Positions 1 to 64,000 of a stretch of DNA of 64,000 nucleotides are shown in pieces. This stretch comes from Guillardia theta CCMP2712 (lineage: Eukaryota > Protista > Cryptophyta). The position numbers were made by a program, and so were the translations under genes. The stretch spans positions 458,531-522,530 of the forward strand of contig NW_005434634.1 in the NCBI RefSeq assembly GCF_000315625.1, read 5' to 3'. Below the pieces are notes generated by a model that did no database searches, had not been told where the DNA came from, and saw only the letters and a program-made list of their open reading frames with translations. Numbering within the stretch: the stretch's first letter is position 1; every line of letters begins with the position of its first letter.

Positions 1-3000
1 CTTGTTTTGGACTGTCTTTCATTTCGTCTACCATCCTGTCNNNNNNNNNNNNNNNNNNNNNNNNNNNNNNNNNNNNNNNNNNNNNNNNNNNNNNNNNNNN
101 NNNNNNNNNNNNNNNNNNNNNNNNNNNNNNNNNNNNNNNNNNNNNNNNNNNNNTGGAAAGTATTCAACCGTCCTCGGTTGATGTCGGAGGTCAACTGGTC
201 ACGCTAGTCGGCAAGGGCTTTAGTCGTGACAGGGAGTACGAGTGCGACTTTGGTAAAGAAGAACGAGTTGGTTGCCAAGGAATCTCGTTAACGGCGGTTG
301 AGTGCAGAGCACCAGCTCACAGGCCTGGGAACGTGAGTCTCAGGCTATGGCACGGGAACGGTCAGTTCTTAGTCTTGTCCCCGCTGCTTTCGTACCATTC
401 ACCGATTCGAGTGGACAGTATCACTCCGAGTTTTGGACCGAGCCGGGGTGGAAGTCGAGTGACAGTCACAGGGTACGGATTTCACTTGGAATCTCACCTT
501 GTATGTTGCCAAGGTCTTGATTGTCTCCCGGCTGAAATCATTGATTCATCGCACATTCTTTGTGTTCCTGCAATACTCAGCCCTCAACGTTCTTTTGAAA
601 TTTTCACATGGGCATGTTGTGGGAAGATTTGAGTTCTGTTTATGCGAGACGAGGAGTTTCAATTTGATTAGAACGTCCATGATTGAGAATCTATCCTACA
701 GCTTCTCCGTCCAAGGAGAATGTTTTGATGCAGGGTTACAGTGCCATTATTTATTTGATGATGGCCAGGAAAGCCTTAGGCAAATAGAGCTGATTTCATC
801 CACCTTGCTTTCCTGTTCCTTGCCGGTTGTTTTTCAAGGAATACGAGGAATTGAAGTGATTGATTCCAGTATGCGACCTGTTGGAGCTTTATTTGAGCCA
901 AATCTATCACAGATTCACTCAATCTTGCCTTCTCTTTCAAGTACAATGAGTGGCCTAAGAGTTACTGTAATTGGATATTTCCCAGCCACCAGACTTAATT
1001 GTCATCTTGGATCTCATCCAGGCCATGCTCTTTGGTACTCAAGTAGTGTTGTGTACTGTAATCTTCCAGCAGTCCAGAGGCCAGGGTCATACATGATCAG
1101 GGTTAGCACTTCCGATTCCGTTTCTGAGCTGAGCTCGAAACAAATTGTTTTCTATGAAAGTGTTTCCTTCACTGGTTTTCACATTGATGATTTAAGGTCA
1201 GAAATCCTCATATTTGGTCAGAATTTCAAATCAAATGGAAATGCCATTTGCAATGTTTCAGGACAATTGATCGAGTCAGAAAGAATATCTTCTAGATCCT
1301 TAAAATGTCTACTCCACATGAAACAAAGTGAGATAACATATGTTTCAGTCTTGGTTGACGATTCTCACTATGTTGTCGAACCACTCTCTGTCACCGAGTT
1401 GACTTTGCTATTCGTCCGTCCATCGATGGCACCAATGTCCGGAGGAATGATAATTACAGTAGTGGGGAAAGGTTTTGACGTTTCAAGGTTTATGACTATC
1501 GGAGGTATCAAAACTCCCTTTGAAATAATAACGAGTTCCTTGATACTGCTGTTGGTTCCAAGCATTCAACGTGAAGTATCCCCACGTATTTGTTTAACGC
1601 ATGCCATGACTTCCATTGGAGCTTGTCTTGAGAAGGCGTACTCCTACGTTCGTAATCCACATTTGATTGAAATACTTCCTTCAAGCTTTGACCAGGAATA
1701 TCACGTGATGATCACTGCAATAGGGGAACACTTTGATGATGCATTGAATTTACGATGCAAACTCAGTTTGATGTCTACAGATACAGTATTTCTCAGCTCT
1801 TCGAGGGTTTTATGCAGATTTGATCGTATTGACAGTCAGGCTAATTTATCATTTTCAATCCTCTGTGGAAATTTTTCCTGTGGCGATAAGAGTTTGTTGT
1901 TTTCATTCCCAAGTATTTATTTTCGAGTTGCACCAACAACAGTGATTTACGACCAAACGACTCTTTTGCGAATACAATTTTCACAAAGGCACAATCAAAG
2001 TTTGTACTGTTGTATAGGTGCGGAGCGTTTTCCATTTATAGCAAGCTCACGGTTGATGTCAAGTTGTGCTGTGCATGTTCGCAAGACTGCTGATGTATCA
2101 ATTCGGTTATGCAATGGCATGGGATTAACTGTTTCAAATTCGCATAAGCTTTGGGTCTCTGCCAGCCCACAATTGTTTCAAGTTTCACCGTCCATAATTT
2201 CAGCTAGAGGAGGGCAGCGGATTGTTGTGACCTTGGAAAGAGGCGATGCAGACGGCAAAATATTTTGTGCTTTCGGCCCAAGGAAGATTCTTTCTTTTGA
2301 CATCACGCAGAGCCTAATAGCATGCACAACGCCCAAAATTTTGGACAAAGTGCTTCCATTCCATTTGGTTTTTGAAAGCTCTCGAGTTGTAAGCAACTCT
2401 GTTGAGCTTCGTTCCAAAGTAGACTCTAATATAGTTTCTATCTATCCCACGAGTGCAAAGTATGCAACAGGAACCAGGATCAGGTTTGAATTGGATAATG
2501 CTCAATTGTTTACGTATTGCCATATCGGAGGAATCCAAAGTGTTCTAACCACCATTTCGGATTGGCTGTTTGAATGTGAGATACCATATGGGATACAGGG
2601 TGAGCAGAAGATTGCTTTGTGCATTGTAAAAGACTATTGTCTTTATTACGCTCAATCAATCTATGTTGAACCAGCTCATGTGTCAACCTTCAATCCCTCA
2701 ATCGGACCGACGAAAAGTGCTTTATTGGTCACTTTTTCCATTGATGCATCTGTATCATTGTCTCAAGCATATTACTGCCGTTTCAAAGATAAGACAACAC
2801 TTGTAACAATTTTAGATCATAGCGTCAGCTGTCATACTCCCTTGATGTCCAAGGAGCAGAGCGTTGCAGTAAGCCTTCTAGATCAAGAAGGAAGATCGAT
2901 TAAAGACTTTTCCAGAAGATTCTTTTTCGTCCATGACATGGAAATATGGTCCTTCTATCCCTCGAAAGGTCCTACGGAAGGATTTTATCTTACAATTCAT

Positions 3001-6000: not shown

Positions 6001-9000
6001 TTTTCATATTTCAACCCAATCAGTGTGATCTCAGTGAAATCAAAGGTTGGATCAGATGGAATTGAAGTTGTGATCCGTGGACGAAATTTCAGACATCCGA
6101 TGTCTTGCTCATTTCTCTTGAACACAACTACAGAATGTCGTGTTGCAAGCAGGAAGGCTAGTCTCCATACGAGCACTGAATTATCATGCCATCTGCCATA
6201 TTTGAGCTTTCGGTATGATTCGATAGCTTTGATTAGAACCGATACGGATGAGCGAACTGGTTGGCACAAGCTCTCATTTGATGCTGAACCGAAGATAGCG
6301 CTTCTTTCTCAAAGTACTTCAGCAGGATGTACAGAGTTTCGCTTGCACATCAAAAATGGTATCCCAGAACAAAGACATTTTTGCATTCTGGCCGCAAGGC
6401 ACAAGTCTATTTTATCGCTTGTGGTGACGTATTGGAACATGCATGTTTTGTTTGAATTTGCATGGGAACTACAGTCTTGCAATTGCTGAAGGAAGTACTG
6501 GCCTTTCGAATAGGATAATGACAAGCATTCTTGCATTCCCAGAATTTTTTGAGGTTGCTCCAAAGTCGATTCTCAAATTGGTGGCACCTTGACTGTGTTT
6601 GGTGCAAACTTGGACACCTTCCAACCTTACAAATGTTTTCTCGGCAATGTTGAAACCGTATCTATCTTGAAGAGCACTAACCAATTAGAATGTCAATTTC
6701 CCGAGGTTACTGTTGGCATCCATCAGTTTTCTGTTCGGTCTCGTCTAGACTATGTAATGAATAGTCAGTTTCAGTCAGAAATCAAAGTCATTAAAGCTTT
6801 CGCGATTGAATCCATCTTTCCTTCATTTGGATATGACTTTGGAGGGGCAACAATAACGCTTCGCGGGAGAGGATATGTCGATGAATCATTCGGTTGTTGT
6901 TTGAATACAACACGCTTGCCATTGATTCGTGCAAAGAATTTGCTCACTTGCAAGATTCTGCCATCTTTACCAGGCAAATTTATTGTTGCTGTGTCACATA
7001 ATTGCTCTACAAACAGAGATCCTCTTCTTTCATTGCAATCGATGTTCAAGGTCCTCCCAAAGCCCCAGATTGGCTCAATTGATCCTTTGCATGTTTTTCC
7101 TTGCAGAAATTCATCATTCTTCTTTTCAGGTACAGACTTGCACATTTTTTCCTCATGGAAAATCAAACTGGGTAATCATACTTGCGACATCACAATGGTC
7201 AATGAAACACTATTGAGATGCTCGGTTGAAATAACTACCATTGGTCTGTTACCTGTACATTTGCTATTGACAGAGTTTGATTTTCATGAGACTTTGAATT
7301 TTGTCGTAACATCCCGAAAACAGCCTAGCTTACTCTGCACTCAAGAACATCTAAGTCGTGAGCAATCATCTTTGGCCTTCATAAGCCATGATGATCTGCG
7401 GAATTTAAGATTTTCTTGCAAAACCACATTTGGCAAATTTGAGGGGCAGCTAATCTCTCAATCCACACTAGATTGTAACCTTCCCAATCTAAGGAATTCG
7501 CACGAGAATTCTGTGTTTGTGACTTTGCAAGCTGATCACTGTAGCTTACCCTTATTTTCCAAAGATTTTTCGATTTTGGAAGATTTGTCTGTGACGTCAT
7601 TCGTACCATCTACAAGTAGTTACATAGGAGATACCGTTATCACAGTGTATGGCAAAGGCTTTTCTCCAAACTTTACAAGAATTTCTCAGGATGATGGCCA
7701 AATTCTCTCAAGTTACACCATATCTTCCTCTAAAGTTTTGGTCAATGTTCCACCACGCAAGGCGGAAGGAAAGGTAAGATTATACATCTTTACAGATATG
7801 ATCCACAGAATGTTCTTGGGTATTTTCCGCTATTCTAATCCCCCAAGAATCGACCAAATGATTCCATCAGTCACAAATGCGAAAAATATTCTTTTGACCA
7901 TAGTTGGCAAAGGATTTGAGGAAAATTCAAAGTTCAAATTAGGTCAACGAATAATCTGCAAAAATGTTATGCATTTGGCAGAGATATTCATTGTAAAATG
8001 CTCCAATCTGCATCAAGGGAATTATTCTGTTTCCTACAGCAGCAATGGAATCAACTTTTTCAAGTCAAGCTTTACACTTGCAGTCATGTTCTCTCTGAAG
8101 ATGATCCTTCAACCAAGTGGAGGTTTTGTTATGAAGGGTTCTCTCATATCAATCCAAAGCTCTTCTCAGAATGTGGATTTTTGCAGGATAGGAGGAATTA
8201 CAATCAATGCTATACCTTCAAAGAACAATGCATATACATGTCAAATACCCAAGCAACTACGCTGCAACGATACTTCATGCGTCTATCCATTTGCTGTTCA
8301 TGGTCCTAATGTCCTTTTTCATACTCTTTACAACATTCATGGACTTGAGATATATTCAATACAGCCTACATTCATGATACAACAAGCGGAAAGTGTTGTC
8401 TCTATCCTTGGGAAACATTTTCATGGCAATGAAGGACTTCTTTGTGAAATTGCAACTTTTCGGAAGCCGGTCATGATGGTCCGATCGGATCTGGTTCTAT
8501 GTGATATATCTCGAATAAAACTAGATGTGGGAATTTCTCAATTAAAGTTGCTGCTAAGCAATGGAGGGTATCACAAGGAATTCATGGTCGATATTCGCCG
8601 TGGATTTGAAATTTGGTACATCTTCCCGCAGAGAGTCGATTATTCAGATTCGATGGCTGATAAGACCGTATGCTTGTATGGTGGCCCCTTCCCAACCGGA
8701 CTATCCTACACCTGCCGGGTTGGGTCAACCGCAGTGAGAGCTGAAAGAGTTGACGATGAAAAGGTTTGTATTACTATCCCGCTTTTATCAAACGGTAATT
8801 ATACAATCAATCTGCTTGTCGATCAGGTTGATCGCTCACATTCGAATCAACAACTTGAAGTAATACGAACTGAATCCTTTGACTACATTACCCCAACAAG
8901 GGCCTCTACAATGGGGGGAGGCATACTCACAATACACGGTCTCTTCTATTATTCGCAGGTTTTGCACTTGAATTGTCAATTTTGCAGTCATTCTGTGAAC

Positions 9001-12000
9001 GTCACTTTGTTCAATCGAACAACGTTACTTTGCGAGATTCCAGAAGGAATCACTGGAAGATCAACAGTGGATATGATCGACCGAGGGAATGCAAAGGTCC
9101 TGGCAAGGTTTTCATTTCTGTACGAGCCATCATTAGTTCCTGTCGTGTTATCTTTGCATCCTAGCAAAATCATAATCCGAAATTCAAATATCATCTTGAT
9201 ATTAGGGGCAAATTTTTCATCTGACATGTCGTGCAATTTTGGGAATCTTATCTCACGATTGTACAGCTTTGAGAATTCCTATGAAGTGTTTTGTAAATCT
9301 CCATATGTTTCTGAACCTAAAGAAATAGACTTCTTCCTTTCAAACGAATTTGGAGGTGCAAGTAATAATTTATCCTTTAGCTTTCAAAATTTGATGATCA
9401 CTCAGTTTGATCCTCCTGTCATAATTCATGGTGTCACAAAATCGATCCGGATGGAATTCAACTCAATCACTTTACCTTCTCGACTCTTTTGTAGACTTGG
9501 GGACGTTGTCGTGCCTGGCATTATGGAAAACAATCGACTTGACTGTTTTTTGAGTAATCATCCTTGGATTTCGGGATCATATTTCTTGGAAGTAATGTAC
9601 GACAACTCAGAATTTTGTCAATTTCAAGGAACTGTAGAAATTTTTGAAATTCCTGAACTTTGGAAGATCAGTCCTTTGTACTTGGCTCGAAGTCAGGAAA
9701 TAACCCTATTTGGAAAGCATTTCAGAATTGGGAAGGTTGAATATTTCTGTAATTTTGGTTATCAAGGTGTCACAAGGGTCTTGGTAATGTCGTCGACGAG
9801 TGTCCGATGTGTTATTTCTGCGCGGCAGAGTAGAGGCAATAGCGTTAGCATCATAATCAAGGAAAGGCAATCCCAGTCAGAATACATTTCTTCGAATGTC
9901 CTTTGGATCAAGCATGAATTTAGACTTTCTCTCTTGAAGGTTCAACACTCAACAGATTCGATAGGGAGACTCCTTGTGGCCACGTCGGGTGCCCCAATCT
10001 TGAACTTAGCATTTTGCATGATCAACGGACAAGTACAGTCAAGTCCTGCAGAAACAATTTCCTCTACTTTGCTGTTGTGTTCAAGGACTTGTACATTCCA
10101 TGAAACAAATGTTCTACAAGTGATGTATAATCATGGTCTGCGTTCCAACGAATTGAATTTCTCATCACCTTCAACAATTCATTTGACTGCAGCTGTCCCA
10201 TGGAAGGTGAATCCTGGAATAAATGGCGAAATAACTATAAGGGGCGCTTGTTTTTTGCGGTTTCAGACATTTACCTGCTACTTCGGAAATAAACTTTCAG
10301 GAACTGCTAAATGGAAAAGCAACACAGAAGTAATTTGCTCTTTGCGCCATGTCCCTTCAGGCAATTTCTCTTTAGCTTTGAAAAGTGAGTCAGCGATGTC
10401 TAACCAGATAATGATATCGGTTGGCATTGTGAATGAAGAGATCTTGATACTGCCCAGCTTTGGTCCATCCAATGGCGGACATTTTATGATCCCTGCATTT
10501 GATCAGATTTTCCTCAATCGTTTGACTTGTATCATGTTCAGCTCAGAAGAATGGTTTGCGCTTGAACGTTTCAACAATCGCTATGTAATTCCAAGAGCCA
10601 AACCAGGGAGCTGGAGATTGAACTTTGTAGGCGACAAATTCAGCATCATTCGAAATTACAGTCTGTATGAGGAAGAATTTCTTCTTTCTACTATTCCGCG
10701 CGTTGGACCTTACCAAACTACATTTGGAATTACAATCTATGGAAGGAACTTTCTGCCGGGTATTGCTGTACTATTTTCAGGTAAAGATGTATCGACAACA
10801 TTCATGTCGAGTACAGAAATTGTTTGCTTATCCCCCAGGCAAGAACCGAGAGAAAGAAATCCTTGTATCATCTCGGTGTCAAACAATGGGGTTGACTTCT
10901 CTCCTTCGACTCTCAAATTTGTATACACTGCCCAGCCAAAGTTCATCGGCATTTCTCCGGATGTAGTTTTGTGTGAAGAGAGAATACAGGCAGTGACGGT
11001 GATTGGGGAAGACTTCGAGAAGCAGGCACTGTTTCGATGTAGCTTCGGAGGACGCGACAGCACTCTAGCAGAATACATTAGTTCATCTAAAATTATTTGT
11101 GCTGATACCTTGAGCTTTCAGGGAAATTTCTCGCTACAAATTGCGTCGACAATGGACACCGGACATTGGTCCACAAAATTGAAATGCAAAGGCGTCCGGA
11201 AGTCTATCATTTTAGATCCATCATTTGGACCAGCAAGTGGAGGATACATCATAACAGTTGAGGTACAACAGAATGAGGATGACTCGAAAATTGGAGATCC
11301 GGTTTCTTGTATTGTCAATGGCAAGCATATCCCATACGAATTCGTCAGAGGATCGTTGATATACTGCATGCTGCCATCTATGGATCCAGGTATCATACCA
11401 ATCGGAATTCGGTTACATTGGGGAAGTAATGTTGCAACGGACATTCTGACGAATTTCCGTTGTCTAAGAGACTTTTGGATCAATTTGATACGACCATCAT
11501 TTGGGCCATCGTCTGGCTCGACAACAGTTTCGTTAGTTGGAGGATACTTTATGAAATATTCTGAATATTCATGCATTTTTGGATTAGGTGAGGGGAGAGG
11601 CCTTGTCGTGACCTCCACAGTGCTTGCATGTGAAGTGCCTGCCAGAAAGGCGGCTGAAATTGAATGTGTAAATCTTGCTGTGGATGGTTGGATGCTTCCA
11701 GAAAATGATTGTGCACATAAATTTATATTCCTGGACTGCAATCTTTCCTTAGCATTCGATCGACTGCAAGGGGCGCGTGCTACAATCAGAGGTTTCAGAA
11801 CATGCTTCCCAATACATTTCACCTATCAGTTGGTCAAATGAAGTCTTCGTGCACACAGGATTGTACGTCGAAACATCTTGTTTGTGATTTTCCATTCAGT
11901 ATGCCAGGAAATTTCACATGGAGCATCTTGATTGATGATAGCTTGGTATGTCAAAACAATCAAACATTGATCTTACACACTTCCCGTTCTGACATCGACA

Positions 12001-54000: not shown

Positions 54001-57000
54001 CTTTTCCATCACAGAACGAGATCAATATTCGAACCAAAGGACTCTTGGTGGCAATGGTAATATCATTTCAATCTTCTTCAATGTAGAGAATCCATCAGAC
54101 ATCTTGCAAGGGGACATTCAAGATAACATGGATGGTACCTACCGGTTTCAATATACTGCAAATTCTATTGGAACAATCGGGATTTCAGTTTTGTATGCTA
54201 ATGTGCATGTATATCAGAGTCCTTTCAGGGTAATTATAAAAGAGAAAGCTGATCTGCCGGTAGCTTCAATGACAACAGCCAATGGACCAGGGCTGGGTGG
54301 AAGCATTGCAGGATGCCCAAGTCTGACTGCAACGACCTGTCCTATGTCAGCAGGTGAAATTTATGTAACCTTACGAGACAGGGATAATGTAAGGATAAAT
54401 TATCTTCTTGAAGGCCTGCTATTGATCGCATCCTGGACCTCGCCAAGTGGAACCATCACATCCACGTACTTTAGAGATGGCCAGTGGCTAGTAAGCTACA
54501 AAACTACAGTGGCAGGAACTTACAGTATTGCAATCAACTTGAATGGCAGCCAGATTTCAAACAGTCCATTTCAGATCTTCGTAAACGCAGCCGATGCCCT
54601 TCCTTCAATCACTCGAGCAAGGATTCCATATTCCAGTATCTGTACAGCAGGAGCTTTGGGATCGATGGTAGTTGAGGCTAAAGACTTATATGGAAACATC
54701 AAAGTATATGATCTGGTGAAACCTACAGATAGTGTATCTGGCACATTTTCAGGACCTGATGTTTTCCAGGCTACCACTTTTCTTGAGAAGTCATCTGGAC
54801 TATTTACCTTGCAATGGGTTGCTAAAACAAGCGGGACGTACAACCTGACAGTCAACCTCAACGGCAACGAAATATGGGGAAGTCCATATGTGGTTGTTGT
54901 GTTGCCCGGAGAGATGGTATCATTCAATACACAGACTTACGGCATCGGGAAAGACTTGGCAACTGCGGGTCTCCTTGCCTCATTTCTAATACAAATACGA
55001 GATCAATTCGACAATCCAACAGTACCTTCCGAACCATCAGATGTTGCAACTTTTTACGCATTCCTAGAAAGTCGGGGTCTGACCGAGAAATCTGCAGTTT
55101 TCCCCAGTTGTAGGGAAAATGTGACTTGTTTCGGTCACGGTCAATGCATACAACAGTCTGGTTCCAGTCAAGGGTGCCAATGTCAAGACGGGTTTGATGG
55201 CTCCAATTGTAACATATGTTCACCAAATTGGTATGGACCTGACTGTAAGACATTCGGCTGGCCATGCGATAATTGTGGTGGACGAGGATTCTGTTCGGAC
55301 GGTGGAACTACATGCAATTGCGGAAAGAATTTCATTGGAGCGAAGTGCGAGGGGTGCGCACCAGGATTCTATGGAACCGGTTGTGATAAGTTTTGTGATG
55401 ATTTTATAACTTGTGGAGGAAGGGGATATTGTAACAAGAACGGCGACTGTGTTCTACAAAAAATTCATGCTGTCCTCCGAAGATCTGAGTCCGAATCTCA
55501 ACTTATCGCCGAATACAATGCAACCATATCAGGCAGTTATGCTTTATTTGTGCTGTATGGGCAATGTTCCTTCGAAACTGAACTACCTGATCAATGCGTT
55601 GGAGCCATGCACGCAAAAGGAAGTCCTTACACAGTTACAGTAGTTCCAACAATCTTCAGCGCAGAAAATTCAGAGGTAATTGGTGATGGTTTGAGCATTT
55701 CCACCTCTGGTGTCCTCGCTACTTTTATAGTGAGGTCGCGCGATACCTTTGGAAACCTTCGATCCAAGGGAGGTGAGTCGTTAAGAATTTTGCTAATAGG
55801 AACACAGACTTTGAAAATCTCCTATACTGATAATTTGGATGGACAGTATAATGCCTCCTACGTCCCTATATTAGCTGGTGATTACTTGATTTATATCAGA
55901 TACGGAAACCTCTTAGTGGGTCGTCAATCAAATTCTGGAGGTCAGATCATACCAGATTACCAAGTGCATGTATTTGCTGGAAACATTTCAGGCTTGAATT
56001 GTACTGCAAGAAGCCTTACCATAATCAAAGTTGGAAATCCTATAATTGTGTCAATTCAGGCCCGCGATTTTTACGGATCTGCACGTGAAGTTGGTGGAGA
56101 TAGGTTTATTGTGCACATGTTTTTTGATACTTCAAATAGGACATCCACTGCTGTCGACGATGGGAGTGGAAAGTATTCTGACAGCTTTTACCCACTTGAT
56201 ACAGGAAGATTTGAAATACAAATATTTTTCGTGACCACTGAGGATAATCTTATCCAAGTTTCGGGAAGTCCCATCCTAGGTAACGTAATAGCTGGAGATC
56301 CTGATATAAACATGTCTTTTGTTTCTTTGTCTGGCGCAACAGAAGGATCTTGTTTGGCATCAAAAGTTTGGGACATCAATGTTGGGCAATCGTTCAGTAT
56401 GTATGTGATCTATGTCGATCAAGGTCAAAATTTGATCAAAATAATGCCCGATTTTGTGCCTCCAACAATTTCTTTCAAGCAGACTCTCTGTTCATTTTGC
56501 AACTGCAATTCAACGGTGCCAAATGCTTCCCTGTCTAAAGCGTTTACAAGGGCTCCATCTTCAAAATATATCATTTTTGATTGGAAATTTACTCGTTCAG
56601 GCATATATCATGTTGATATTACGATTCATTCTGCGCATATATTCCAAAATGTAGAAGGGAAAGCTTGTAACAGTACAAAAGTAATAAGTCAAAATATTCC
56701 TGGAAGTCTTACTACATGTGACTTGATGAGAAGTCCTTTCACATTTCGAGTCCAGGCTTCGCGAATCCAAGCAGATCACTCTACAGCAAACGGCGGCGGT
56801 CTAGCAGACTATATATTAGGGGACACTGCACAAGAGCGAGCATTCTATATCTATCCACGCGATGCTTATGGCAATCAACCAGATCAACAGCAGATGGAAG
56901 ACCAGCTCAACAGCGTCGAGGTGTCGTTGATATGGCCTAGTTCTATTAGCATGTGTTCTCTTTCTGTACAGAGTACAGAATACACATGTACGTACGTGAC

Positions 57001-60000
57001 AACGACTGCTGGCAGTTACATGGTTCGTGTACTGGTAAGCTCTGTTGAGATATCTGACAGCCCTTTTCATTTTTTGGTCGAACCTGGCGAACCTTTTCAA
57101 AACACCACATCAATCGACCTGCAGGAGGGCCAAGGATATCTCCTTGGGACAGCGGTTACCATTCTCATCACGATCCGAGACAAGTATTGGAATCTCAGGT
57201 CTACGAACTTTGATTCGGTTCGTCGACTAGAGAATAATGCATATGGAGACGATAAAATGATAGTTTTTCAGAACTACTTCACAACTGTTTGCAATGGATC
57301 GTCATGTATGAGAGTTTCTGGTACAGACTTTGTCTTCATGGACATGGACTCTCGCGGAACTAAGTACACTGTGTCCAAAGTGTCCTCGAGTGGGGAATAC
57401 TCATTATCATTCAGACCTAGTGGGGCCAATAGAAGTACTTTCAATCTTCTAATTTGCGATCGTCTATGTTGTGAAAATGAAACGAAATGCCCTGTTCTTG
57501 ATGTTTGTAAACAGAAAGGCGATTGTGAACAAGCATTTTGCTTTGTGGCTACAAGTCTTCAAAGTCGGATCCACCATCCCTGCAAGGGAATGAAAGACTC
57601 AAAAAATAATTACAGTCCATTTACCCTCTTCCCATTCACCACCTATGGGGGAACGAGAGCAGCAACTTCGATAGCCTTGGGAAGTGATATCATAAGTACG
57701 GGATCAACGCCATACATAATGCACACCGCAGGAAATCCAGTCACATTTACTATCAGAGCTATGGATGAATTTGGAGTCCAGGCAAGTTCAGGTGGTGATA
57801 AGTGGCTCATTACAATCGTTAGATATGATACAACTAGTGGAGATGCGATCTCAACCAACATTCTTTCCACCATTACTGACAATGGTAATGGACTGTATGA
57901 TTGCAAATATGTCATGACACTCTCTGGTCCATACTTTTTGGAAATCAAACATGCAGATATTGACAATCGAACTGGAATTGTAAGAGCTCCCATGCAAATC
58001 AAAAATAGTCCGTTCTTTAATCTGGTATCTCTTCCGAATTCCACGCAAGCTGATAAAAGTACATTGCAAATAGTTACCTTGTTCACATGTGGGATTTCAT
58101 CAACATTTCTCCTACAGACCTACGACACGTTTGACAACAAGCAGTTGTATGCTTCCACTTCTCTCCCACAAAGTATAAATAAATACAAAGATTACATCTC
58201 CGCTAGATTTGTTTTGGGCGAGGTGTTTGTGACAGCCTCAATCAAAAATTATCCGGTATGTGCTCCCAACCCCATTTTGAGCGCTGATATTCTTTGTACG
58301 CCATTTGTTTTGGAGGGATTAATCACAGTATCTGGAAATTATAAACTGATCATCGAGGTGAATATGCAAGTTATCTCTAAGATCGACTTTTCAATCCAAG
58401 TATCACCAGGATTACCAAACCCCCAATCCTTCTTGCTCAGCGGCACGGGCATACAGCAATCTGTAGCTGGTGTGATTTCTACATTTTCGCTGAGATTGTT
58501 AGATTCGTTTTCCAATCGTGTATTCATATCGGTGGCTGTAGCTTCAGCAAAAATTGTTGGATCCATCAATGGTGGGTCCTACTCTTGCTACCGGGCAGAT
58601 GACAGTCTCTGCGTAGACCCAACTCCAATCTCCACGTCACTGAGCATTTCTCCCTCACAGCCTGCAAACTTTCTGGAAACTGAGACAAAGTATAGTGATT
58701 GGATACTGACGTACAATTGTACTAGGGCAGGTAACCATTCGTTGCAAATGTGGTACGATAATGCAGGAATTTCTAATTCTCCATTTACACTAGAGGTGTT
58801 AAATAACGTAGTGGATTCGAAAATTTCATCAGTTATGCGATTTGAAACATCTGACATTCAGAGTGGATCTAATCAACATTTCTATGTGTACACCCGAGAT
58901 TTGTATGGAAATCTTGTAACAAACTTCTACGGCACATTCAGTGTTTTATTGTTTGGTCCATCTTCCATGACAGGGACCTTGTCATCCACTGCTGAATTTG
59001 GCATTTTTGGGTGTTCACTCACGCCAACTGTGAGTGGATCTTACCGTCTTACTGTGAAGCTGATTGATTCTCACATAAGCGGTAGTCCAATGAATTTGAC
59101 TGTGATTGCAGGAATGGCGAGTGCGCCTCGTTGTTCTATCGTAACCTCCCCAGGTGTTGGAACAGTGGGTATTGCATCCTCAATATATTTTCAGGCACAT
59201 GATTCCTACAACAATAAAATTTTGACGGGTGGAGACATATTTTTGGCTGAAATCACGGATCCTAAATTTGCACGTACGATCGTTGTGCCAGCCGATTTGA
59301 ACGATGGTATGTACAGACTGACCTTTGCCTCAAGTGTAACAGGACGACACAATGTTACCATCACTCTAGGAGGCTCGCATATATTTGGAAGTCCCTTAAG
59401 CATGCTGATCGACTCAGGAGCACTTGATTTGGGTCAAACGTTGATAGTATTTCGATCGACAACCGAAGCTGGAACTCCTCTTCGAATATCAGTCCTTCCA
59501 AGGGATGCTTATGCAAACGAGAAGTCTCAAGCAGATCTGATGCTTTACTTGCTTACACTTGTGACTTCGATTCAATTAGAATTCAATTCCAACGCAGTCT
59601 TCTATGAATATCCTGACAGCAAGTACTCGTACGACGGCTATGTCACATATACCCGCTCAGGACAGTATACCGTCCAATTAAAAGCACTTCAAGTCAATTC
59701 TGCCGGTATTTCAGAGATGCAGGAGTTGTCGAGTTCCCCGATTCTCATCACATGCAACCCATCTCTTCCAAATGAAACAAAATCGTTTGCTTTTGGGCAA
59801 GGAACCTCAAGGTACTGCATGCCAACTGTACCTGATGTTCTCTGACTTTTTTCCCAGGTTAATAGCAGGTCGAAATGGATCATTTACAATTGTTGCAAAA
59901 GATGAATACTCAAACAATCTTACACGAGGAGGTGACCCTTTCATTTTCTGGTTGATTTACACGAATCCAGTAATCCGAATGAATCAGACTGTCCATGACT

Positions 60001-63000
60001 TACAGAATGGGTTATATCAATCCTACTTTGTATTGACAGCAGCCGGAATCTACAATGTTGAAATTCGACTTGCAGGAAGTCATATTTCTGGGTCTCCATT
60101 CACTGTTCTTGTCGACCCAGCTTCAGTTGATCCATGGAAGACAATTCTCTATGGATCGGGTGTATATGGCGTATCCCTGGGGAAGGAATCCTACTTTGAT
60201 GTTCAATTGTCTGATGGATATGGAAATGCCGTCAAAGGCTCGAAAGGCGACGTAGAGACACTACTGGATGATTCAAAATCCATTTCCCTTCCCTCGTCTT
60301 CAGTTCAACCTAATGGCATGATTCGGTGTACATTCTCCGGCCTGATATTAGGCAACTATAGACTTTACATATATGTGTACAACATCAGTATCCCATCAAA
60401 TCCAATCTCAGGTCTGGTGGTCCTTGGTCCAGGAAATCCGAGCCCGGCTAATAGTATATTTACAGCTGGACAAACTTTCACGTTCACAGCAGGAATAGAA
60501 AAAATGTTCATTTTGGAACTGAGGGATTCCTTGGGCATCAAGATAGACAATGGAAATTACATATCTTCCATCTCGTTGGAGTTTGATGTATCTCCAGGAT
60601 ATTCTCTTCCACAACTGATCAAAGAGCCATTACCCAACGAAGATGGAACTTATAATATTTGGATTCCGTCTTCTTTGACTCGAGCAGGGGATTACCGACT
60701 GCGGGTATATATTTCAAACGGTGAGATGAATAGAAGCCCATTCAATTTGACCGTACTATCAACAGCAGCAGACGCACAAGCCTGTAGAGTGCGTCCTATG
60801 GCTCTTGGGGGTGTATACACCTTGTCCACAGCCGGGGTTACCGGTCAATTCCTGCTTGACATATTCGACAGTTTTGGGAACACAGTTCGCTACGATCCTA
60901 CGATAGATATAGGTCTGAAAGCCAAGATGATCGGTCCTGCACAAACCTTAATCAAAACGATCAACTTTTATTCAGGACTTTGGGAAATCGATTATGTCGG
61001 GACACGTAGCGGAGAGTATCAGATGGAAATAACGATTGCCGACTTGCATGTACGACAATCACCCTTCGTCATCACTGTGCAGCATGCGGAGATTAATCCA
61101 TCCAGTTCTTTGGTCAACCTGACTCAACTTCTCACAGCTGGGACGATGCATGTGTTCTCAATTCAAAGCAAGGACGCGTATGATAATGAGGTCGATACCA
61201 ATGGTGCACCCATTCTTGCTGTTTCTATAGCTGATCCGCAGTTCTTTTCTGTATCAGATATCTCTCGCATTCAGCCAACCAGCGCAACGGTCAAATATCG
61301 TGCACGGGGTCTTTATCAAGGAACGCTTACCATGACGAAAAGTGGTAGTTTCCTGTTCAATATTCAGTACAATTCAATACATTTACAAGGAAGCCCTTTT
61401 GGAATTACCGTGAACCCTTCACATATTGAAGGTGGTATGTGTGTTTCTATTGGCAGCGGGATACAAGCAGCAATCAGCGGCGAAATAGCCACCTTCACAA
61501 TACTTGCTTACGACCGCTTTAGCAACAAGTTCATCGCAGGAGGAGAGAAGTTTGAAAGCACTCTACGGCCATCCAATTGCATAGACCAGGGTTGTAATGT
61601 ATTAGATACTGTGAAAGTCTATGACCAAAATGATGGCTCTTACTTGGGTTTCTATCAGGCTGGGAACCCAGGTGAATATCTAATGACAATTCAAGTCAAC
61701 ATGAAGGGACTAAAGGGATCCCCCTACCGCATCCAGATTGGAAGCCCGTACCCACCAATTCCATCGGTATCATGGATGTCAGGAACAGGAGGGGAAATCG
61801 AGGTTGAATTTGACATTGCAACTGACATGGGGGGAATTTCTGGCTCTGTCACATGTGACTTTTTCTTTCAAAAAATTACCTCAGACAAGTTTGGGACAGA
61901 CTGTACTTCATTTTGGTCAACACCAAGAACTTTGATGGTGCGCCTGGGGGCAGGTGCCACGATCCTTCCGGGAAATGACTTGAATCTTGCATCGGACCGA
62001 ATCAGAAATAAAAGACAAACTTCATATTTTACCAGTGGCAGTGTGAGATTACAGGCGCCATTGCAGCCGTTGACACCCATACTAATCATTGATGGGCCCT
62101 CGTTTATTAGCTCATGTGATATTCTTGTACTCGACGCGAGGATGTCTCAGGGGGGGGGGGGGAGAAATCTGAATTTTCAATGGGGAATCATTCCAGGTGG
62201 AGATATTGAACAATTGTTAATGGCATCTATACAGGAGCAGAACATAAACGTCCTATGCCCTGATTGGGTCGATCCGTTGTCTAAGAGCATCTGTCAAGCA
62301 CCTATCCTACAACTTGATCCGAAAATAATGGCTGACGGTGGTGAATATACCTTTTTGCTTACTGCCACAAATTTTTTCGATCAAATATCAACAGTACAGC
62401 ACAGAGTCACCAAGGTGCCCAATGATGGAATGCCAATACTTTCGATCCAAGGTGAATCCACCCTCAGTGTAAACCCAGACGAAGACAATACAATCCGTTT
62501 ATCTGTACAGTCATCAAGCTGCGGCAGCAATAATCTATCCTTTGCATGGACTCTTGTTTCTGCTTCAGGTATAGTTCTGCTCAAGAATATAGATCTGAAT
62601 CAAAGGAGACTTTTCATCCCCAAGAATTCTCTTCAAGGAGGATCACAGTACACATTTATGGCGGAACTGAGCAGTCACCAATTCAATGAAACTATGACTA
62701 CAAATACAACAATTCTGATAATCACGTCCGAGATATCTGCGATTGCTGCCATTTCTGGTGGAAGTCGTACATCATCTGTTGCAGATTTGAGCACTTTTTC
62801 TCTACAACTATTTGGAAACATAGCCTACGAATCAGTTTCAAGAATTGAATGGTATTGCGAGCCATCACCGTGCTTCTTAGATGTCTACAACAGTATTTCT
62901 GTAGATGGACGAACATTTGCAATAGCACCCTTTTCGATTCTACCAGGCTTGTACAGACTGATTGCAGCCGTGACAATGCAGCAGGGAAGTATCTCGGTGC

Positions 63001-64000
63001 GTTTCTCCGCTGCTGCTAATGTCTTTGTGATCCCTTCAAGTCTGTCTGCCGTTTCCATATTCTCATCGGCCATGAAATTCAACTCCAAGCAAACCGTGAA
63101 TCTGATTGGCTCCCCTCAGAGCTACATTGACAAGACATTAAATTACGAATGGTTTCAGTCTCGTGGAGGACAGAATTTGCTTAGTGACAAAATCACAAGT
63201 ATTTCAAGCAGATTTTCGGATACACTTGGTTTTGCCAAAAATGCCTTGATGGAGGGTATGCAATATCGATACCGGCTCGAAGTTTGGAATCAAAATGGAT
63301 TTGGATTTGCTGAGATCGACATTGCTGTAAGCAAGGCGCCCTCAGGAGGAACTTTTGAAGTGAATCCATCGAAAGGGTTTGCTGTTGATACTAATTTTGA
63401 ATTAAGTGTGTCGCGTTGGACAGACTCTCCAGAGAATCTGCCGTTGTCATATCTTTTCAGCTATGTGTTAGATGTTGAAGATAGCACAAGTACAGCCGTC
63501 CCTTTCATCTACACCGACAAACCTTTTCAAAATGTGAGGATTCCGAATACAAACAAAGCAGTGCGCAATTCTTCCTTGATAGTACAGATTTTTAATATGG
63601 CTCATAGCGGAACAACTATCAACAGAACAGTCGAACTGAAAACGCCTCTAGATCCTTTTAGTTCAGCTGCAACCCTCCGCTCCCTGATTGAAATTTCTTC
63701 ATTGGCTCAAGATTTTGATAGCTTGATCATTCTGTCTTCGTGCTTAAGCAGTTTGCTAGAGACTTCATTAAGTCCTACGAGAAGAGACCAATCTACATTT
63801 TTCTGTCCAAACGATGGGACAAGTTGTGATAATGACGAGATCAGGAGCTTTCTCTTCCAGAAGGTGAAATCTTCATTGCAATACATCAAACCTGTTGCAG
63901 ACGAAATATCTATGCTTGCCAATTCGATTCAGAAAACGACCACTGCTCGGATGAATCGTACAAGTCAGATGCTGAGTTTATTGCTAACACAACAAGTCAT
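1..64000 (+). CDS. Giant extracellular multidomain protein, partial at both ends (>21,000 aa): IPT/TIG array - TMEM132-like/cohesin - RCC1-like propeller - dockerin - filamin-type Ig array - REJ (polycystin-1/REJ-like surface protein)
   Basis: Coding sequence is continuous on the + strand with no intergenic space. At every ORF junction the repeat motif carries on in register across a canonical short intron, an N gap or a 1-nt frame break. No credible start or terminal stop in the window. Paired Cys and N-x-S/T sequons are abundant throughout. Confidence 0.85.
3..585 (+). CDS. Coding segment 1 (IPT/TIG repeats; 5'-partial, crosses N gap 41-153)
   Basis: Positions 3-40 translate as CFGLSFISSTIL. 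The same frame after the gap (from 156) gives ESIQPSSVDVGGQLVTLVGKGFSRDREYECDFG...VECRAPAHRPGNVSL...ITPSFGPSRGGSRVTVTGYGF, which are typical IPT repeats. The frame switches to that of ORF 499 near 585 (approximate). Confidence 0.8.
41..153. other. Assembly gap (113 N)
   Basis: Run of N. Confidence 1.
586..6430 (+). CDS. Coding segment 2 (IPT/TIG repeats; bulk of ORF 499..6489)
   Basis: Recurring ~85-90 aa units PSxGPxxGG..(V/I)T(I/V)xGxxF...CxFG...SSxxxxCxxP, e.g. PSSGPAEGGNMVTIHGNAF and PSQGPIDGGQEVTITGDN. Both ends are approximate frame-break positions. Confidence 0.85.
6428..6570 (+). CDS. Short bridging coding segment in a shifted frame (IPT repeat end and start)
   Basis: The frame starting at 6428 reads RIGTCMFCLNLHGNYSLAIAEGSTGLSNRIMTSILAFPEFFEVAPKSI. 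It contains the GNYSL motif of the other repeats and joins SQIGGTLTVFGAN at 6571. Confidence 0.7.
6571..11793 (+). CDS. Coding segment 3 (IPT/TIG repeats; ORF 6589..11841)
   Basis: IPT motifs throughout (PSFGYDFGGATITLRGRGY, PSFGPSSGSTTVSLVGGYF, SVSNNGVDFS). Ends ...GARATIRG, then continues FQNMLPNTF in the frame of ORF 11802. Confidence 0.85.
10875..11074 (+). repeat. Direct repeat A, copy 1 (200 bp; copy 2 at 17102-17301)
   Basis: Sequences match from GGTGTCAAACAATGGG to CTAGCAGAAT. I saw one difference, synonymous (CTG/TTG Leu). Confidence 0.95.
11793..24525 (+). CDS. Coding segment 4 (IPT/TIG repeats; ORF 11802..24542 up to the splice donor)
   Basis: About 4,240 open codons of IPT repeats (PSNGPLHGGTRIRVIGSHF, PSQGPAEGGTRVLLYGAGF). 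The ORF stop at 24540-24542 lies inside the predicted intron. Confidence 0.9.
17102..17301 (+). repeat. Direct repeat A, copy 2
   Basis: Matches 10875-11074; both encode VSNNGVDFSPSTLKFVYTAQPKF...GGRDSTLAE. Confidence 0.95.
21973..22207 (+). repeat. Direct repeat B, copy 1 (at least 235 bp; copy 2 at 27196-27430 is cut by the gap)
   Basis: Matches from CAGGCCCTATTCATGGACG to CTACTATGAATC; encodes GPIHGRTLCRIQVST...HAYRYYE. Confidence 0.95.
23752..24149 (+). repeat. Direct repeat C, copy 1 (398 bp; copy 2 at 32202-32599)
   Basis: Matches from AGAGCGATCTCC to CTGCAAGTTT at offset 8450; encodes SDLLFEYIPD...GQGIRCKF. Confidence 0.95.
24526..24573 (+). other. Spliceosomal intron, 48 nt, GT-AG, phase 1
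   Basis: G|GTATGA donor, AT/T-rich body, TGTACAG|G acceptor. It contains the in-frame TGA. Removal joins the two ORFs in frame as ...VERAG-WKLQEE. Confidence 0.85.
24574..27430 (+). CDS. Coding segment 5 (linker plus IPT/TIG repeats, runs into the N gap)
   Basis: Open frame of ORF 24558 with IPT motifs (PSLGPILGGTLVRI, PPSGGVEISIYGTNF, PSTGPIHGRTL) up to the gap. Confidence 0.85.
25407..26211 (+). repeat. Direct repeat D, copy 1 (805 bp; copy 2 at 33197-34001)
   Basis: Matches from TACGTCAAATTTGGAGTC at offset 7790. The only differences I saw are three substitutions in the last ~50 bp. Confidence 0.95.
27196..27430 (+). repeat. Direct repeat B, copy 2 (runs into the N gap)
   Basis: Matches 21973-22207 up to the first N. 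Confidence 0.95.
27431..28309. other. Assembly gap (879 N), next to repeat B copy 2
   Basis: Run of N that starts inside a near-identical duplication. Confidence 1.
28312..28491 (+). CDS. Coding segment 6 (IPT repeat right after the gap)
   Basis: Reads ...EIPYLFYLSPSIGSTLGGFPVSVFGRHLQEHSDCFVGDQK. After one extra G (28492) it continues as LPMQWISSQNVVC in the frame of ORF 28361. Confidence 0.8.
28493..59811 (+). CDS. Coding segment 7: 31.3-kb uninterrupted reading frame (IPT repeats, central mosaic, filamin-type repeats)
   Basis: ORF 28361..59845 of the track, trimmed to the in-register start and to the splice donor at 59812; about 10,440 codons without a stop. Confidence 0.92.
32202..32599 (+). 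repeat. Direct repeat C, copy 2
   Basis: Matches 23752-24149; no differences seen by eye. Confidence 0.95.
33197..34001 (+). repeat. Direct repeat D, copy 2
   Basis: Matches 25407-26211; encodes YVKFGVDLAEEV...LPGCKMSE. Confidence 0.95.
40000..43100 (+). other. TMEM132-like ectodomain (N-terminal conserved region, cohesin-like domain, tandem BIG/Ig domains)
   Basis: Ordered motifs GCNIIIEKQWF; LFNIPALAG; LKCESTDPSV; SCDLILTGNEYAGSKDLKLLVTF; VPFVVWFP; IRSIKGF; YETAKVR. They parallel TMEM132 motifs as I recall them (LPxxWF; LNTAxLTG; CxSxDEDV; CDYxFVxGKE; TVWxP; LxQIKGW; YQxAxVR). Confidence 0.7.
43103..43565 (+). other. Cohesin-like domain
   Basis: KDFVEVPVYF...FGAILIDVVFDTQQLKFES...HVVDLKMI fits the cohesin pattern GxxVxVPV...xxxxxxYDxxxLxF. 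Confidence 0.6.
43640..44395 (+). repeat. Seven RCC1/BLIP-II-like (crinkly-type) repeats; predicted 7-bladed beta-propeller
   Basis: Seven ~37-aa units: VCGIIIDGTGVCWN, VCGITVMKQLICWN, FCAIANQGIVECWN, QCGIDNKRFLSCIS, LCAINNQAMIVCWV, FTAILRNGSAFLF, SCGILTNASAICWN. Confidence 0.8.
44534..44785 (+). other. Dockerin-like domain (two EF-hand-like Ca-binding loops)
   Basis: RGNVNADCKITALDLEFLLWFIHG and MDMDMDGFITIRDSELLASTLIG match the duplicated dockerin pattern GDxNxDGxIxxxDxxxLxxxxxG, with a Cys-rich spacer between them. Confidence 0.7.
45326..45622 (+). other. SRCR (scavenger receptor Cys-rich)-like domain
   Basis: IKL...CLVQLSRNDTWTTVCPINFD....LICKSL...LSCNGTESYISDC...C....FAC follows the SRCR consensus VEV...WGTVCDDxF...VxCRxLG...CxGxExxLxxC. 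Confidence 0.75.
55109..55450 (+). other. EGF/laminin-EGF-like repeats (two full, one partial)
   Basis: CFGHGQC...CQCQDGFDGSNCNICSPNWYGPDC; CGGRGFC...CNCGKNFIGAKCEGCAPGFYGTGC; CGGRGYCNKNGDC. Confidence 0.9.
59812..59857 (+). other. Spliceosomal intron, 46 nt, GT-AG, phase 2
   Basis: AG|GTACTG donor, branch-like CTGAC at 59842-59846, polypyrimidine TTTTTTCCCAG|G acceptor. Splicing restores a complete filamin repeat: AFGQGTSR-LIAGRNGSFTIVAKDEYSN. Confidence 0.93.
59858..64000 (+). CDS. Exon missed by the ORF track (open to window end): 6 filamin-type repeats, pre-REJ domain, REJ module, helical region
   Basis: I translated the frame from 59859 by hand and found no stop up to 64000 (~1,380 codons). 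It includes HISGSPFTVLV, EIEVEFDIATD, LVLDARMSQGGGGRNLNFQW and KAPSGGTFEVNPSKGFAVDTNFELSVSRWTDSPENLPLSYLFSY. Confidence 0.9.
62060..63640 (+). other. REJ (receptor for egg jelly / polycystin-1 family) module
   Basis: LVLDARMS..GRNLNFQW; LFIPKNSLQGGSQYTF; LNYEWFQ...KNALMEGMQYRYRLEV; and the hallmark PSGGTFEVNPSKGFAVDTNFELSVSRWTDSPENLPLSYLFSY (~63335-63465). Confidence 0.85.
62150..62162 (+). repeat. G13 homopolymer inside coding sequence (CAG GGG GGG GGG GGG AGA = QGGGGR)
   Basis: 13 consecutive G; the reading frame is preserved. Confidence 0.9.

Follow-up and report, generated by a model that had tools for sequence, protein, structure and literature searches.

In polycystin-1, the PKD1-like proteins, and the sea urchin REJ receptors, a large immunoglobulin (Ig)-like ectodomain is combined with a REJ domain, then a GAIN domain carrying the GPS motif, and then the first transmembrane (TM) helix, TM1. 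The same order is predicted for the product of a giant gene of the cryptophyte Guillardia theta CCMP2712, which crosses the whole of the 64,000-nucleotide (nt) stretch analyzed here (contig NW_005434634.1, positions 458,531 to 522,530 of the forward strand; hereafter the window). We consider it likely that one nuclear gene of ~94.5 kb, with few short introns, takes up the entire window, which would be its central 64 kb, or its middle two thirds. Positions 1 to 64000 refer to the window, negative numbers lie upstream of it, and plus numbers above 64000 lie downstream; 70 kb of upstream and 30 kb of downstream sequence were examined as well. The genome-wide scans covered an assembly of 87 Mb in 669 contigs, in which the window is C40:458531-522530.

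The likeness to polycystin-1 extends into the membrane, where the predicted helices superpose on TM1 to TM5 (Z 19.0, 20% identity) and a long disordered loop separates TM3 from TM4. However, the giant protein has neither a PLAT domain in the TM1-TM2 loop nor TM6 to TM11, and thus has five TM helices instead of eleven. It also lacks the PKD (PF00801), leucine-rich repeat, and C-lectin domains of polycystin-1, and its ectodomain is ~10 times longer and built of IPT/TIG and filamin repeats. Fibrocystin (PKHD1) and PKHD1L1 resemble it as surface proteins with a tandem IPT/TIG array and a C-terminal membrane anchor. They have, however, ~12 to 14 TIG domains, G8 and PbH1 domains, and one TM helix, whereas the giant protein has ~260 TIG domains, a REJ-GAIN-5TM end, and neither G8 nor PbH1, for which no Pfam scan of the gene gave a match. 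Adhesion G protein-coupled receptors (GPCRs; latrophilin, BAI, and CELSR) likewise place GAIN directly ahead of TM1, and the peptide TDFSSVLL that follows the GPS in the giant protein resembles a tethered peptide. While these receptors carry a secretin-like domain of seven TM helices, the giant protein has five helices that match polycystin-1.

The nearest functional parallel comes from another protist. The mastigonemes of Chlamydomonas are filaments of the Ig-like-domain protein MST1, tied to the membrane via a polycystin-type module with a separate PKD2 (PMC11015965, PMC7265326). Like the MST1/MST3-PKD2-SIP complex, the giant protein would set an Ig-like surface filament on a polycystin-type membrane module. 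The two modules differ in that MST3 has an incomplete PKD2-like channel domain (S2-S6) and proline-rich helices, whereas the giant protein has polycystin-1 TM1 to TM5, REJ, and GAIN. Moreover, filament and anchor lie in one polypeptide in the giant protein, unlike in the Chlamydomonas complex. In size, titin and the PKZILLAs are comparable as single-gene products of >3 MDa; PKZILLA-1 has 45,212 aa and 4.7 MDa and PKZILLA-2 has 3.2 MDa, and they had been missed earlier owing to their difficult genomic structure (10.1101/2024.01.29.577497). If made as predicted, the Guillardia protein would be larger than PKZILLA-2 and smaller only than titin and PKZILLA-1 (10.1101/2024.01.29.577497). Titin is intracellular and the PKZILLAs are enzymes, whereas the giant protein is a predicted extracellular, membrane-anchored Ig-like chain. 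A literature search returned nothing on such proteins in cryptophytes.

The long open frames of the window all lie on the plus strand, and the longest frame on the minus strand encodes 340 aa:

463-6486, plus strand, open frame in frame 1
6553-11838, plus strand, open frame in frame 1
11721-24539, plus strand, open frame in frame 3
24543-28361, plus strand, open frame in frame 3
28343-59842, plus strand, open frame in frame 2, 10,500 codons, stop-free
59682 onward past the window end, plus strand, open frame in frame 3

The frames are open at both window edges and run on to -27885 and +66578. The ATG at -27885, which has an in-frame stop 32 codons ahead of it, opens MSRIIALLLILCLWDAQS, a typical signal peptide, and the first TIG domain follows directly. 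The gene therefore starts 27.9 kb upstream of the window, and it ends with a stop at +66579, 2.6 kb downstream. ATG to stop span 94,464 nt, and removal of the four confident introns (GT-AG, 46-58 nt, at domain boundaries; two in the window and two of 58 and 54 nt upstream) leaves 94,258 nt, or 31,419 codons with the N runs counted at their nominal length. The deduced gap sizes (+1,409 nt, -94 nt, and -36 nt) bring the total to about 31,850 residues, or ~31,700 if optional introns are real. The predicted mass of the product is ~3.5 MDa for about 31,800 residues.

An earlier, sequence-only reading of the window had proposed a single titin-scale membrane protein of REJ/polycystin type with >21,000 aa and >2.3 MDa. 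Its frame was indeed found open at both edges, and its size proved an underestimate, given about 31,800 aa, ~3.5 MDa, and a gene of ~94.5 kb. The ~190 Ig-like folds it counted in the window agree with the 128 TIG domains detected there, together with ~22 TIG-sized holes and ~45 filamin repeats. The signal peptide sought upstream is present at -27885; of the domains sought downstream, the GPS (within GAIN) and TM helices, five in number, are present, whereas PLAT and PKD-channel domains are absent in the Pfam scans. The proposal of one membrane protein is thus supported by the signal peptide, REJ, GAIN/GPS, the five TM helices, and a stop that is conserved in Hanusia.

In our view, the product is quite probably a type-I-like surface protein consisting of a cleavable signal peptide, ~260 IPT/TIG domains, a non-repeat module, an SRCR domain, ~45-48 filamin repeats, REJ, GAIN/GPS, and a five-TM module. 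The parts that fall within the window are as follows:

1-40, plus strand, TIG coding in frame 3, continuing from upstream (open frame -1422 to 629 and TIG matches span the edge)
41-153, no strand, gap 1 of 113 N inside one TIG domain, with the same frame open on either side
154-606, plus strand, TIG coding in frame 3, ending at a 1-nt frameshift site at 598-606
607-6313, plus strand, TIG array in frame 1 (Pfam TIG E 4.8e-83; hidden Markov model (HMM) matches)
6314-6565, plus strand, span of segment 6390-6570 with two models, a 252-nt GT-AG intron or a TIG domain with three 1-nt undercalls
6566-11791, plus strand, TIG array in frame 1 (Pfam TIG E 4.3e-74)
11792-11829, plus strand, junction of frame 1 to frame 3, 1-nt indel favored, alternatively a 38-nt GT-AG intron
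11830-24525, plus strand, TIG array in frame 3 (Pfam TIG E 3.9e-158)
24526-24573, plus strand, GT-AG intron of 48 nt at a domain boundary
24574-27430, plus strand, TIG array in frame 3, the last 242 nt being a 99.2% copy of 21966-22207
27431-28309, no strand, gap 2 of 879 N, deduced content ~2,288 nt, in frame (22208-24386 once more, then 109 nt)
28310-28496, plus strand, TIG coding in frame 1, ending at an extra C, base 28496
28497-39355, plus strand, TIG array in frame 2 (Pfam TIG E 6e-173), final TIG match 39092-39355
39356-45175, plus strand, central non-repeat module of ~1,940 aa, frame stop-free
45176-59811, plus strand, filamin-type Ig repeats in frame 2, overlapped by Ig_GEX2_N and Invasin_D3 matches (Pfam Filamin E 8.8e-77 and 2.5e-165)
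45368-45622, plus strand, SRCR domain (PF00530, E 5e-6, 27.2 bits against a cut-off of 26.1 bits)
59812-59857, plus strand, GT-AG intron of 46 nt
59858-61727, plus strand, last six filamin-type repeats, opening the last exon, which runs to +66578
62616-63647, plus strand, REJ domain (Pfam PF02010, E 8.6e-22, 77.8 bits against a cut-off of 25 bits)
63654-64000, plus strand, start of the GAIN domain (helical subdomain A), which runs on to +64688 with the GPS motif HM/T (here and below, slashes mark cleavage or splice points)

The identity of the membrane end is carried by both sequence and structure prediction. The AlphaFold2 model of the GAIN region, built on 36 aligned relatives (pLDDT, predicted local distance difference test, 78), has a beta-sandwich preceded by a helical subdomain. 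All of its 10 best Protein Data Bank matches in Foldseek are GAIN domains, with BAI3 the best (4dlo, E 1.8e-8) and BAI2, CELSR1, and latrophilin also represented. The GPS site, CRYWDAQGQVYSRTGT...ACQVYHM/TDFSSV, lies directly before TM1 and keeps the His and Thr of the cleavage site (HM/T). Aligned relatives pass the GPS cut-off at the same columns, and the family consensus, C.YWD..WS..GC..C.C.HLTDFA, is the textbook motif. Five TM helices come after GAIN, and the protein ends 17 residues past the last of them. The TM1-TM2 loop (~85 aa) is predicted to be helical and the cytoplasmic TM3-TM4 loop (~350 aa) to be disordered. The model of the five helices (helix pLDDT 90-98) aligns with residues 3066-3610 of polycystin-1 (8z6b_A) at Z 19.0 with a root mean square deviation of 3.3 Å over 190 residues and 20% identity (VIA-align). 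The next chain after polycystin-1 reaches Z 7.4, GPCR chains score Z 6-7, and matches 1 to 11 in Foldseek are all polycystin-1 chains. The predicted module thus matches TM1 to TM5 of polycystin-1, as would be expected of a homolog. No PLAT domain was matched by Pfam in the gene even at E <= 10, and PKD_channel (PF08016), which would mark the TM6-TM11 half, was not matched in the gene either.

A query of 921 residues covering REJ, GAIN, and TM1 to TM3 retrieved 894 proteins at E <= 0.001 from a library of 1.84 billion, most of them over a part only, such as REJ. The closest relatives are 35-41% identical over the whole query, and many of those listed also align at TM4 and TM5, with loops of very different length. 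Among the closest relatives scanned, none has a TIG array; they carry filamin repeats and REJ. The predicted product shows that a free-standing membrane module corresponding to the REJ-GAIN-TM1-5 half of polycystin-1 is present in organisms other than animals and can bear ectodomains of almost any size. Such a module bears on the origin of polycystin-1 and on the role of its N-terminal membrane domain.

The C terminus is anchored by the sister genus. A Hanusia phi protein from the EukProt transcriptome (P0001) shows 80% identity at 100% coverage to a query of the C-terminal 1,400 residues. It aligns with last-exon residues 216-2240 (2,025 residues), again at 80% identity, and ends at the same stop, implying that +66579 is the true C-terminus. 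As this protein comes from a transcriptome, the C-terminal part is transcribed in the sister genus.

Selection on the predicted frame was read from a freshwater metagenome run (X2), which holds a 93-97% identical relative of the giant gene. Among the 35 usable listed differences between this relative and the assembly, 23 lie at codon position 3, and 23 are synonymous versus 12 non-synonymous. In addition, the relative has a 36-nt deletion (window 24,790-24,825) that is in frame. The excess of third-position and synonymous differences and the in-frame deletion indicate that the predicted frame is under purifying selection. Past every break, moreover, thousands of codons follow without a stop in the new frame, and the domains there are intact.

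The breaks between the frames are, we believe, probably short introns, mis-sized gaps in near-identical repeats, and homopolymer indel errors of the assembly. Two introns in the window are clear. The first (CCG/GTATGA...GTACAG/GTT, 24526-24573) leaves frame 3 intact and takes out the stop at 24540, and the second (CAAG/GTACTG...TTCCCAG/GTT, 59812-59857) gives the spliced peptide GQGTSR/LIAGRNGSF, which continues a filamin repeat. The gene contains four assembly gaps, all within internal repeats of 99-100% identity, and two of them are the N runs of the window. At gap 1 (41-153), the start of the interrupted TIG domain is at -107 and that of the following one at 154, in keeping with the period of 258-261 nt. 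A sister copy of 99-100% identity (-2573 to -1888) adds 60 in-frame bases there, CIIPAQTLEGLLQVWVSNT, the expected TIG continuation. Upstream, the gap at -4634 to -3948 sits in the second copy of a 5.9-kb repeat whose first copy has 593 nt at this place; the resulting size difference of 94 nt explains the apparent shift from frame 3 to frame 1.

For gap 2 (27431-28309), we compared the assembly with a resequencing run (X1), whose reads were also used around base 28496. The 242 nt ahead of the gap copy 21966-22207 at 99.2%, and the offset of 5,223 is divisible by 3. One X1 contig across the gap joins 27196-27430, 1,292 letters, and 23500-23781, and a second joins 24357-24386, 109 letters, and the sequence from 28310 onward, while the X1 depth over 23500-24386 is 2.5-4 times the single-copy level. 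A fill of 2,288 nt joins frame 3 before the gap to frame 1 after it exactly, as 2288 - 2 is divisible by 3. Loose ends of the X2 assembly continue in frame at both edges, and one of them matches 22208-22237 with one mismatch. We infer, as the simplest path, that the gap holds ~2,288 nt and not 879; the edge continuity and the frame are observed, and the length is deduced because the path crosses a repeat present ~4 times.

The break at 28492-28496 comes from one surplus C within a CCC run, a base absent from both X1 (depth 66.8) and X2 (depth 6.09). As base 28496 is lacking in two independent read sets, the change from frame 1 to frame 2 is an assembly error. The break within 598-606, where SFEI in frame 3 is followed by SHGHVVG in frame 1 in the three-frame view, keeps the domain period, which leaves no room for an intron at 585-606, and would fit one extra base in a TTTT/AAA run. 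At 11792-11829, a 1-nt shift keeps a 260-nt period, whereas splicing would make the domain 12 aa shorter with a 222-nt period; the 38-nt GT-AG intron is possible there and appears disfavored by domain length. The segment 6390-6570 is the least simple, with TIG-like peptide in all three frames of the three-frame view. Inside 6380-6600, the two frame-1 stretches are not joined by any GT-AG or GC-AG pair, and a canonical intron within that interval was rejected for this reason. In the first of the two models, an intron of 252 nt at 6314-6565 with a weak AAG acceptor gives PKIALLSQ/IDSQIGGT. In the second, an 82-aa TIG domain passes from frame 1 to 3 to 2 and back to 1 by homopolymer undercalls in GG, TTT, and AAA. 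A TIG profile built from 97 of the gene's own domains scored the segment at 37.7 bits with the 252-nt intron and 38.3 bits with the three indels, a near tie that favors neither model. The IPT/TIG period of ~258 nt is held across every junction, as the sequence-only reading had stated in describing the repeats as in register. Its further claim that all junctions are canonical introns, gaps, or 1-nt breaks stands for the introns at 24526-24573 and 59812-59857, both gaps, and base 28496, which was settled by reads, and is not confirmed for 6430-6570, where no canonical intron lies inside 6380-6600.

Several points weigh against one intact gene with the proposed product. The segment 6390-6570 calls for three 1-nt corrections, or else for an intron of unusual length whose acceptor is weak. 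The junctions at ~600, 6390-6570, and ~11,800 in the window and at -17,600 and -1,335 upstream have been read from the sequence only. The path through gap 2 uses 30-letter overlaps of de Bruijn contigs in a repeat of ~4 copies, and the near-identical upstream duplication of 5.9 kb could be partly an assembly duplication. For the TIG part, no Hanusia or other close relative was found in the protein and metagenome searches: a 1,937-aa query gave only matches of 20-22% identity, a 300-aa query gave none at E <= 1e-20, and no relative spanning the TIG junctions was present in the JGI metagenome contigs scanned. A search of sequencing runs for the locus listed no RNA run from this organism, the runs that contain it being DNA or resembling genomic 454 data, so that the single transcript is a predicted one. 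The GPS gives a Pfam match in the right place, at 13.7 bits against a cut-off of 22.5 bits, and its motif (+64,580 to +64,700) has lost the second and fourth conserved Cys (GC to GT and CxC to CxV). With a sub-threshold score and two of four Cys lost, self-cleavage is uncertain; the loss of this pair suggests that one disulfide is missing and that cleavage may be kept. Finally, the function is deduced from the architecture only.

Some of these points would also fit a broken locus, in which real frameshifts at ~600, 6390-6570, ~11,800, or -1,335 leave a decayed pseudogene or truncated products. Five to seven frame breaks in 94 kb speak for such decay. So do the three shifts of frame that fall inside 170 nt at 6390-6570, at a distance of 6 kb from the nearest gap and thus odd for sequencing error, and the RNA search that found no run for the locus. 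However, the sole break checked with reads, at 28496, is an assembly error, and the remaining breaks lie in homopolymer runs of the kind that 454 sequencing miscalls; 454 runs of this organism exist, judging by an adapter B sequence at a loose end. The frames past the breaks, open for thousands of codons with intact TIG domains, and the purifying selection relative to the X2 relative make decay improbable. Four sequencing runs of 2011 share words with the locus (X3-X6). A loose end reads as 454 Titanium adapter B, and the word shares of these runs, 0.14-0.20, equal the Poisson chance of at least 2-fold coverage at 0.6-0.8x of the 87-Mb genome. They are therefore probably genomic 454 shotgun runs and not cDNA, and since the shares fit genomic coverage, they say nothing on expression.

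That the locus comprises at least two neighboring genes, such as one for a secreted TIG-only protein and, after it, one for a TIG-filamin-REJ membrane protein, seems to us very unlikely. The gaps do hide sequence that was not directly read. Against this, all junctions are located inside TIG domains or at their margins, and successive frames stand 0-250 nt apart, with intergenic space absent. The TIG reading also continues in frame on either side of each window gap, and the gene has a single signal peptide and a single TM region.

Over the whole gene, 221 TIG domains were detected by HMM matches, along with ~34 TIG-sized holes, and the estimated total is ~260. Most of these domains are old, as their median best-partner identity is 34%, and only 54 of the 221 have a best partner at least 90% identical; for 44, the best partner lies at an offset of 23 domains. 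Near-identical (98-100%) segmental duplications of 0.2-3.8 kb were also seen within the gene between -21,507 and 34,036, with an offset of mostly ~5.2-6.2 kb (~23 TIG domains). Genome-wide, other uninterrupted TIG frames reach 16,482 (C67), 11,314 (C2), 10,988 and 10,646 (both C25), 8,821 (C56), and 8,567 (C134) codons, indicating that the giant size class is normal for this organism. The giant gene is the largest noted of a giant-TIG gene family in this genome, set apart by its polycystin-1-type base. Database searches with the locus sequences returned no protein of this organism for the locus, and the giant-TIG family of the genome seems to have been missed by standard annotation and protein databases. 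The locus is a clear case of a giant gene hidden by gaps, homopolymer errors, and near-identical internal repeats.

Downstream of the TIG array, Pfam matched nothing in 39263-45175, the region of the central module. TMEM132 Ig domains are the language-model neighbors of window 39,974-43,102 (0.92, though recognition is low, 1586), and cohesin/dockerin and RCC1 proteins are those of window 43,600-44,800 (0.76-0.78); both are leads only. In P0012, a distant relative, Ig_TMEM132_4th scores above its Pfam cut-off. Within window 43,600-44,800, the motif xCGI...G.xxCW recurs in at least six copies with the look of an RCC1-type propeller, and after these C-W repeats come two DxDxDG / DVNxDxxI motifs that resemble dockerin or EF-hand motifs. 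The filamin part comprises 45 repeat matches between 45176 and 61727, with an estimated total of ~45-48, and was matched by Filamin/ABP280 (PF00630, E 2.5e-165) and PF23616 (E 3.9e-54). No actin-binding CH domain was found in the gene product, and the likeness to filamin and GEX2-type proteins is therefore one of shared repeat type only.

An Ig-like fold measures ~4 nm. The ~310 folds of the giant protein would accordingly form a flexible tether or filament of 1.2-1.4 micrometres, standing out from the plasma or flagellar membrane. If made as predicted, it would be longer than any other extracellular protein known to us. The GAIN domain may cleave itself, in which case the giant ectodomain would stay non-covalently on a five-TM stump. 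A pull on the tether, or the binding of a ligand, might then be passed via GAIN and the stalk to the polycystin-1-type membrane module. By analogy with polycystin-1 and polycystin-2, the signal could pass from there to a separately encoded PKD2-type channel.

The same gene could instead serve mainly a structural purpose, as a shed or anchored fiber of the coat, periplast, or flagellar hairs, or as an adhesin, with the polycystin base acting only as an anchor and release site and not as a sensor. We hold this view tentatively. Monotonous Ig-like chain makes up ~97% of the mass, GAIN cleavage would permit shedding, and the cohesin/dockerin-like leads in the central module suggest protein-protein assembly. 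Chlamydomonas offers a parallel in the hair-like MST1 mastigonemes, whose anchor protein bears a PKD2-like membrane domain (PMC11015965, PMC7265326). However, membrane modules of the REJ-GAIN and polycystin-1 type are known from signaling receptors. Structural and sensor roles are moreover not mutually exclusive. A role as fiber, hair, coat, or adhesin and a role as sensor appear equally open.

A candidate partner for the sensor role lies next to the giant gene. The flanking genes bound the locus on both sides, and the channel gene follows the second of them:

-29,955 to -28,807 (L007:45-1193), minus strand, C3HC4 RING-finger gene, divergent from the start of the giant gene
L002:2738-4072, minus strand, gene for a CAAX prenyl protease of Rce1-like type (PF02517, E 9.4e-18), in the interval that separates the giant gene from the channel gene
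+68,950 to +71,400 (L002:4950-7400), plus strand, complete multi-exon PKD2-like cation channel gene (Pfam PKD_channel E 1.9e-19), 2.4 kb past the stop of the giant gene

The genome shows a large expansion of polycystin-type parts, with ~65 PKD_channel loci and ~40 REJ loci. The giant gene and its neighbor are the only REJ/PKD_channel pair within 10 kb of each other; since ~0.6 such pairs are expected by chance, the adjacency alone is not evidence. It is conceivable, though we rate it unlikely, that the giant protein is the receptor half of a split polycystin, in which a micrometre-long Ig-like tether on a REJ-GAIN-TM1-5 module of polycystin-1 type, itself lacking a channel half, signals by docking onto a separate PKD2-type channel, perhaps the one 2.4 kb downstream on the same strand. 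If so, a unicellular alga would possess a long-range mechanosensor or contact sensor, with possible uses in escape, ejectosome discharge, or flagellar control. It would also follow that each half of animal polycystin-1 can exist as a gene of its own.

In the channel gene, exons resembling S1 and a TOP domain lie upstream of a 399-aa exon. The G+C content is ~40% throughout the giant gene, compared with 46-57% in the flanking genes. The 93-97% identical relative in the X2 metagenome was seen over window 23,500-29,499, and its presence in that sample implies that fresh water is a habitat of a close relative of this alga.

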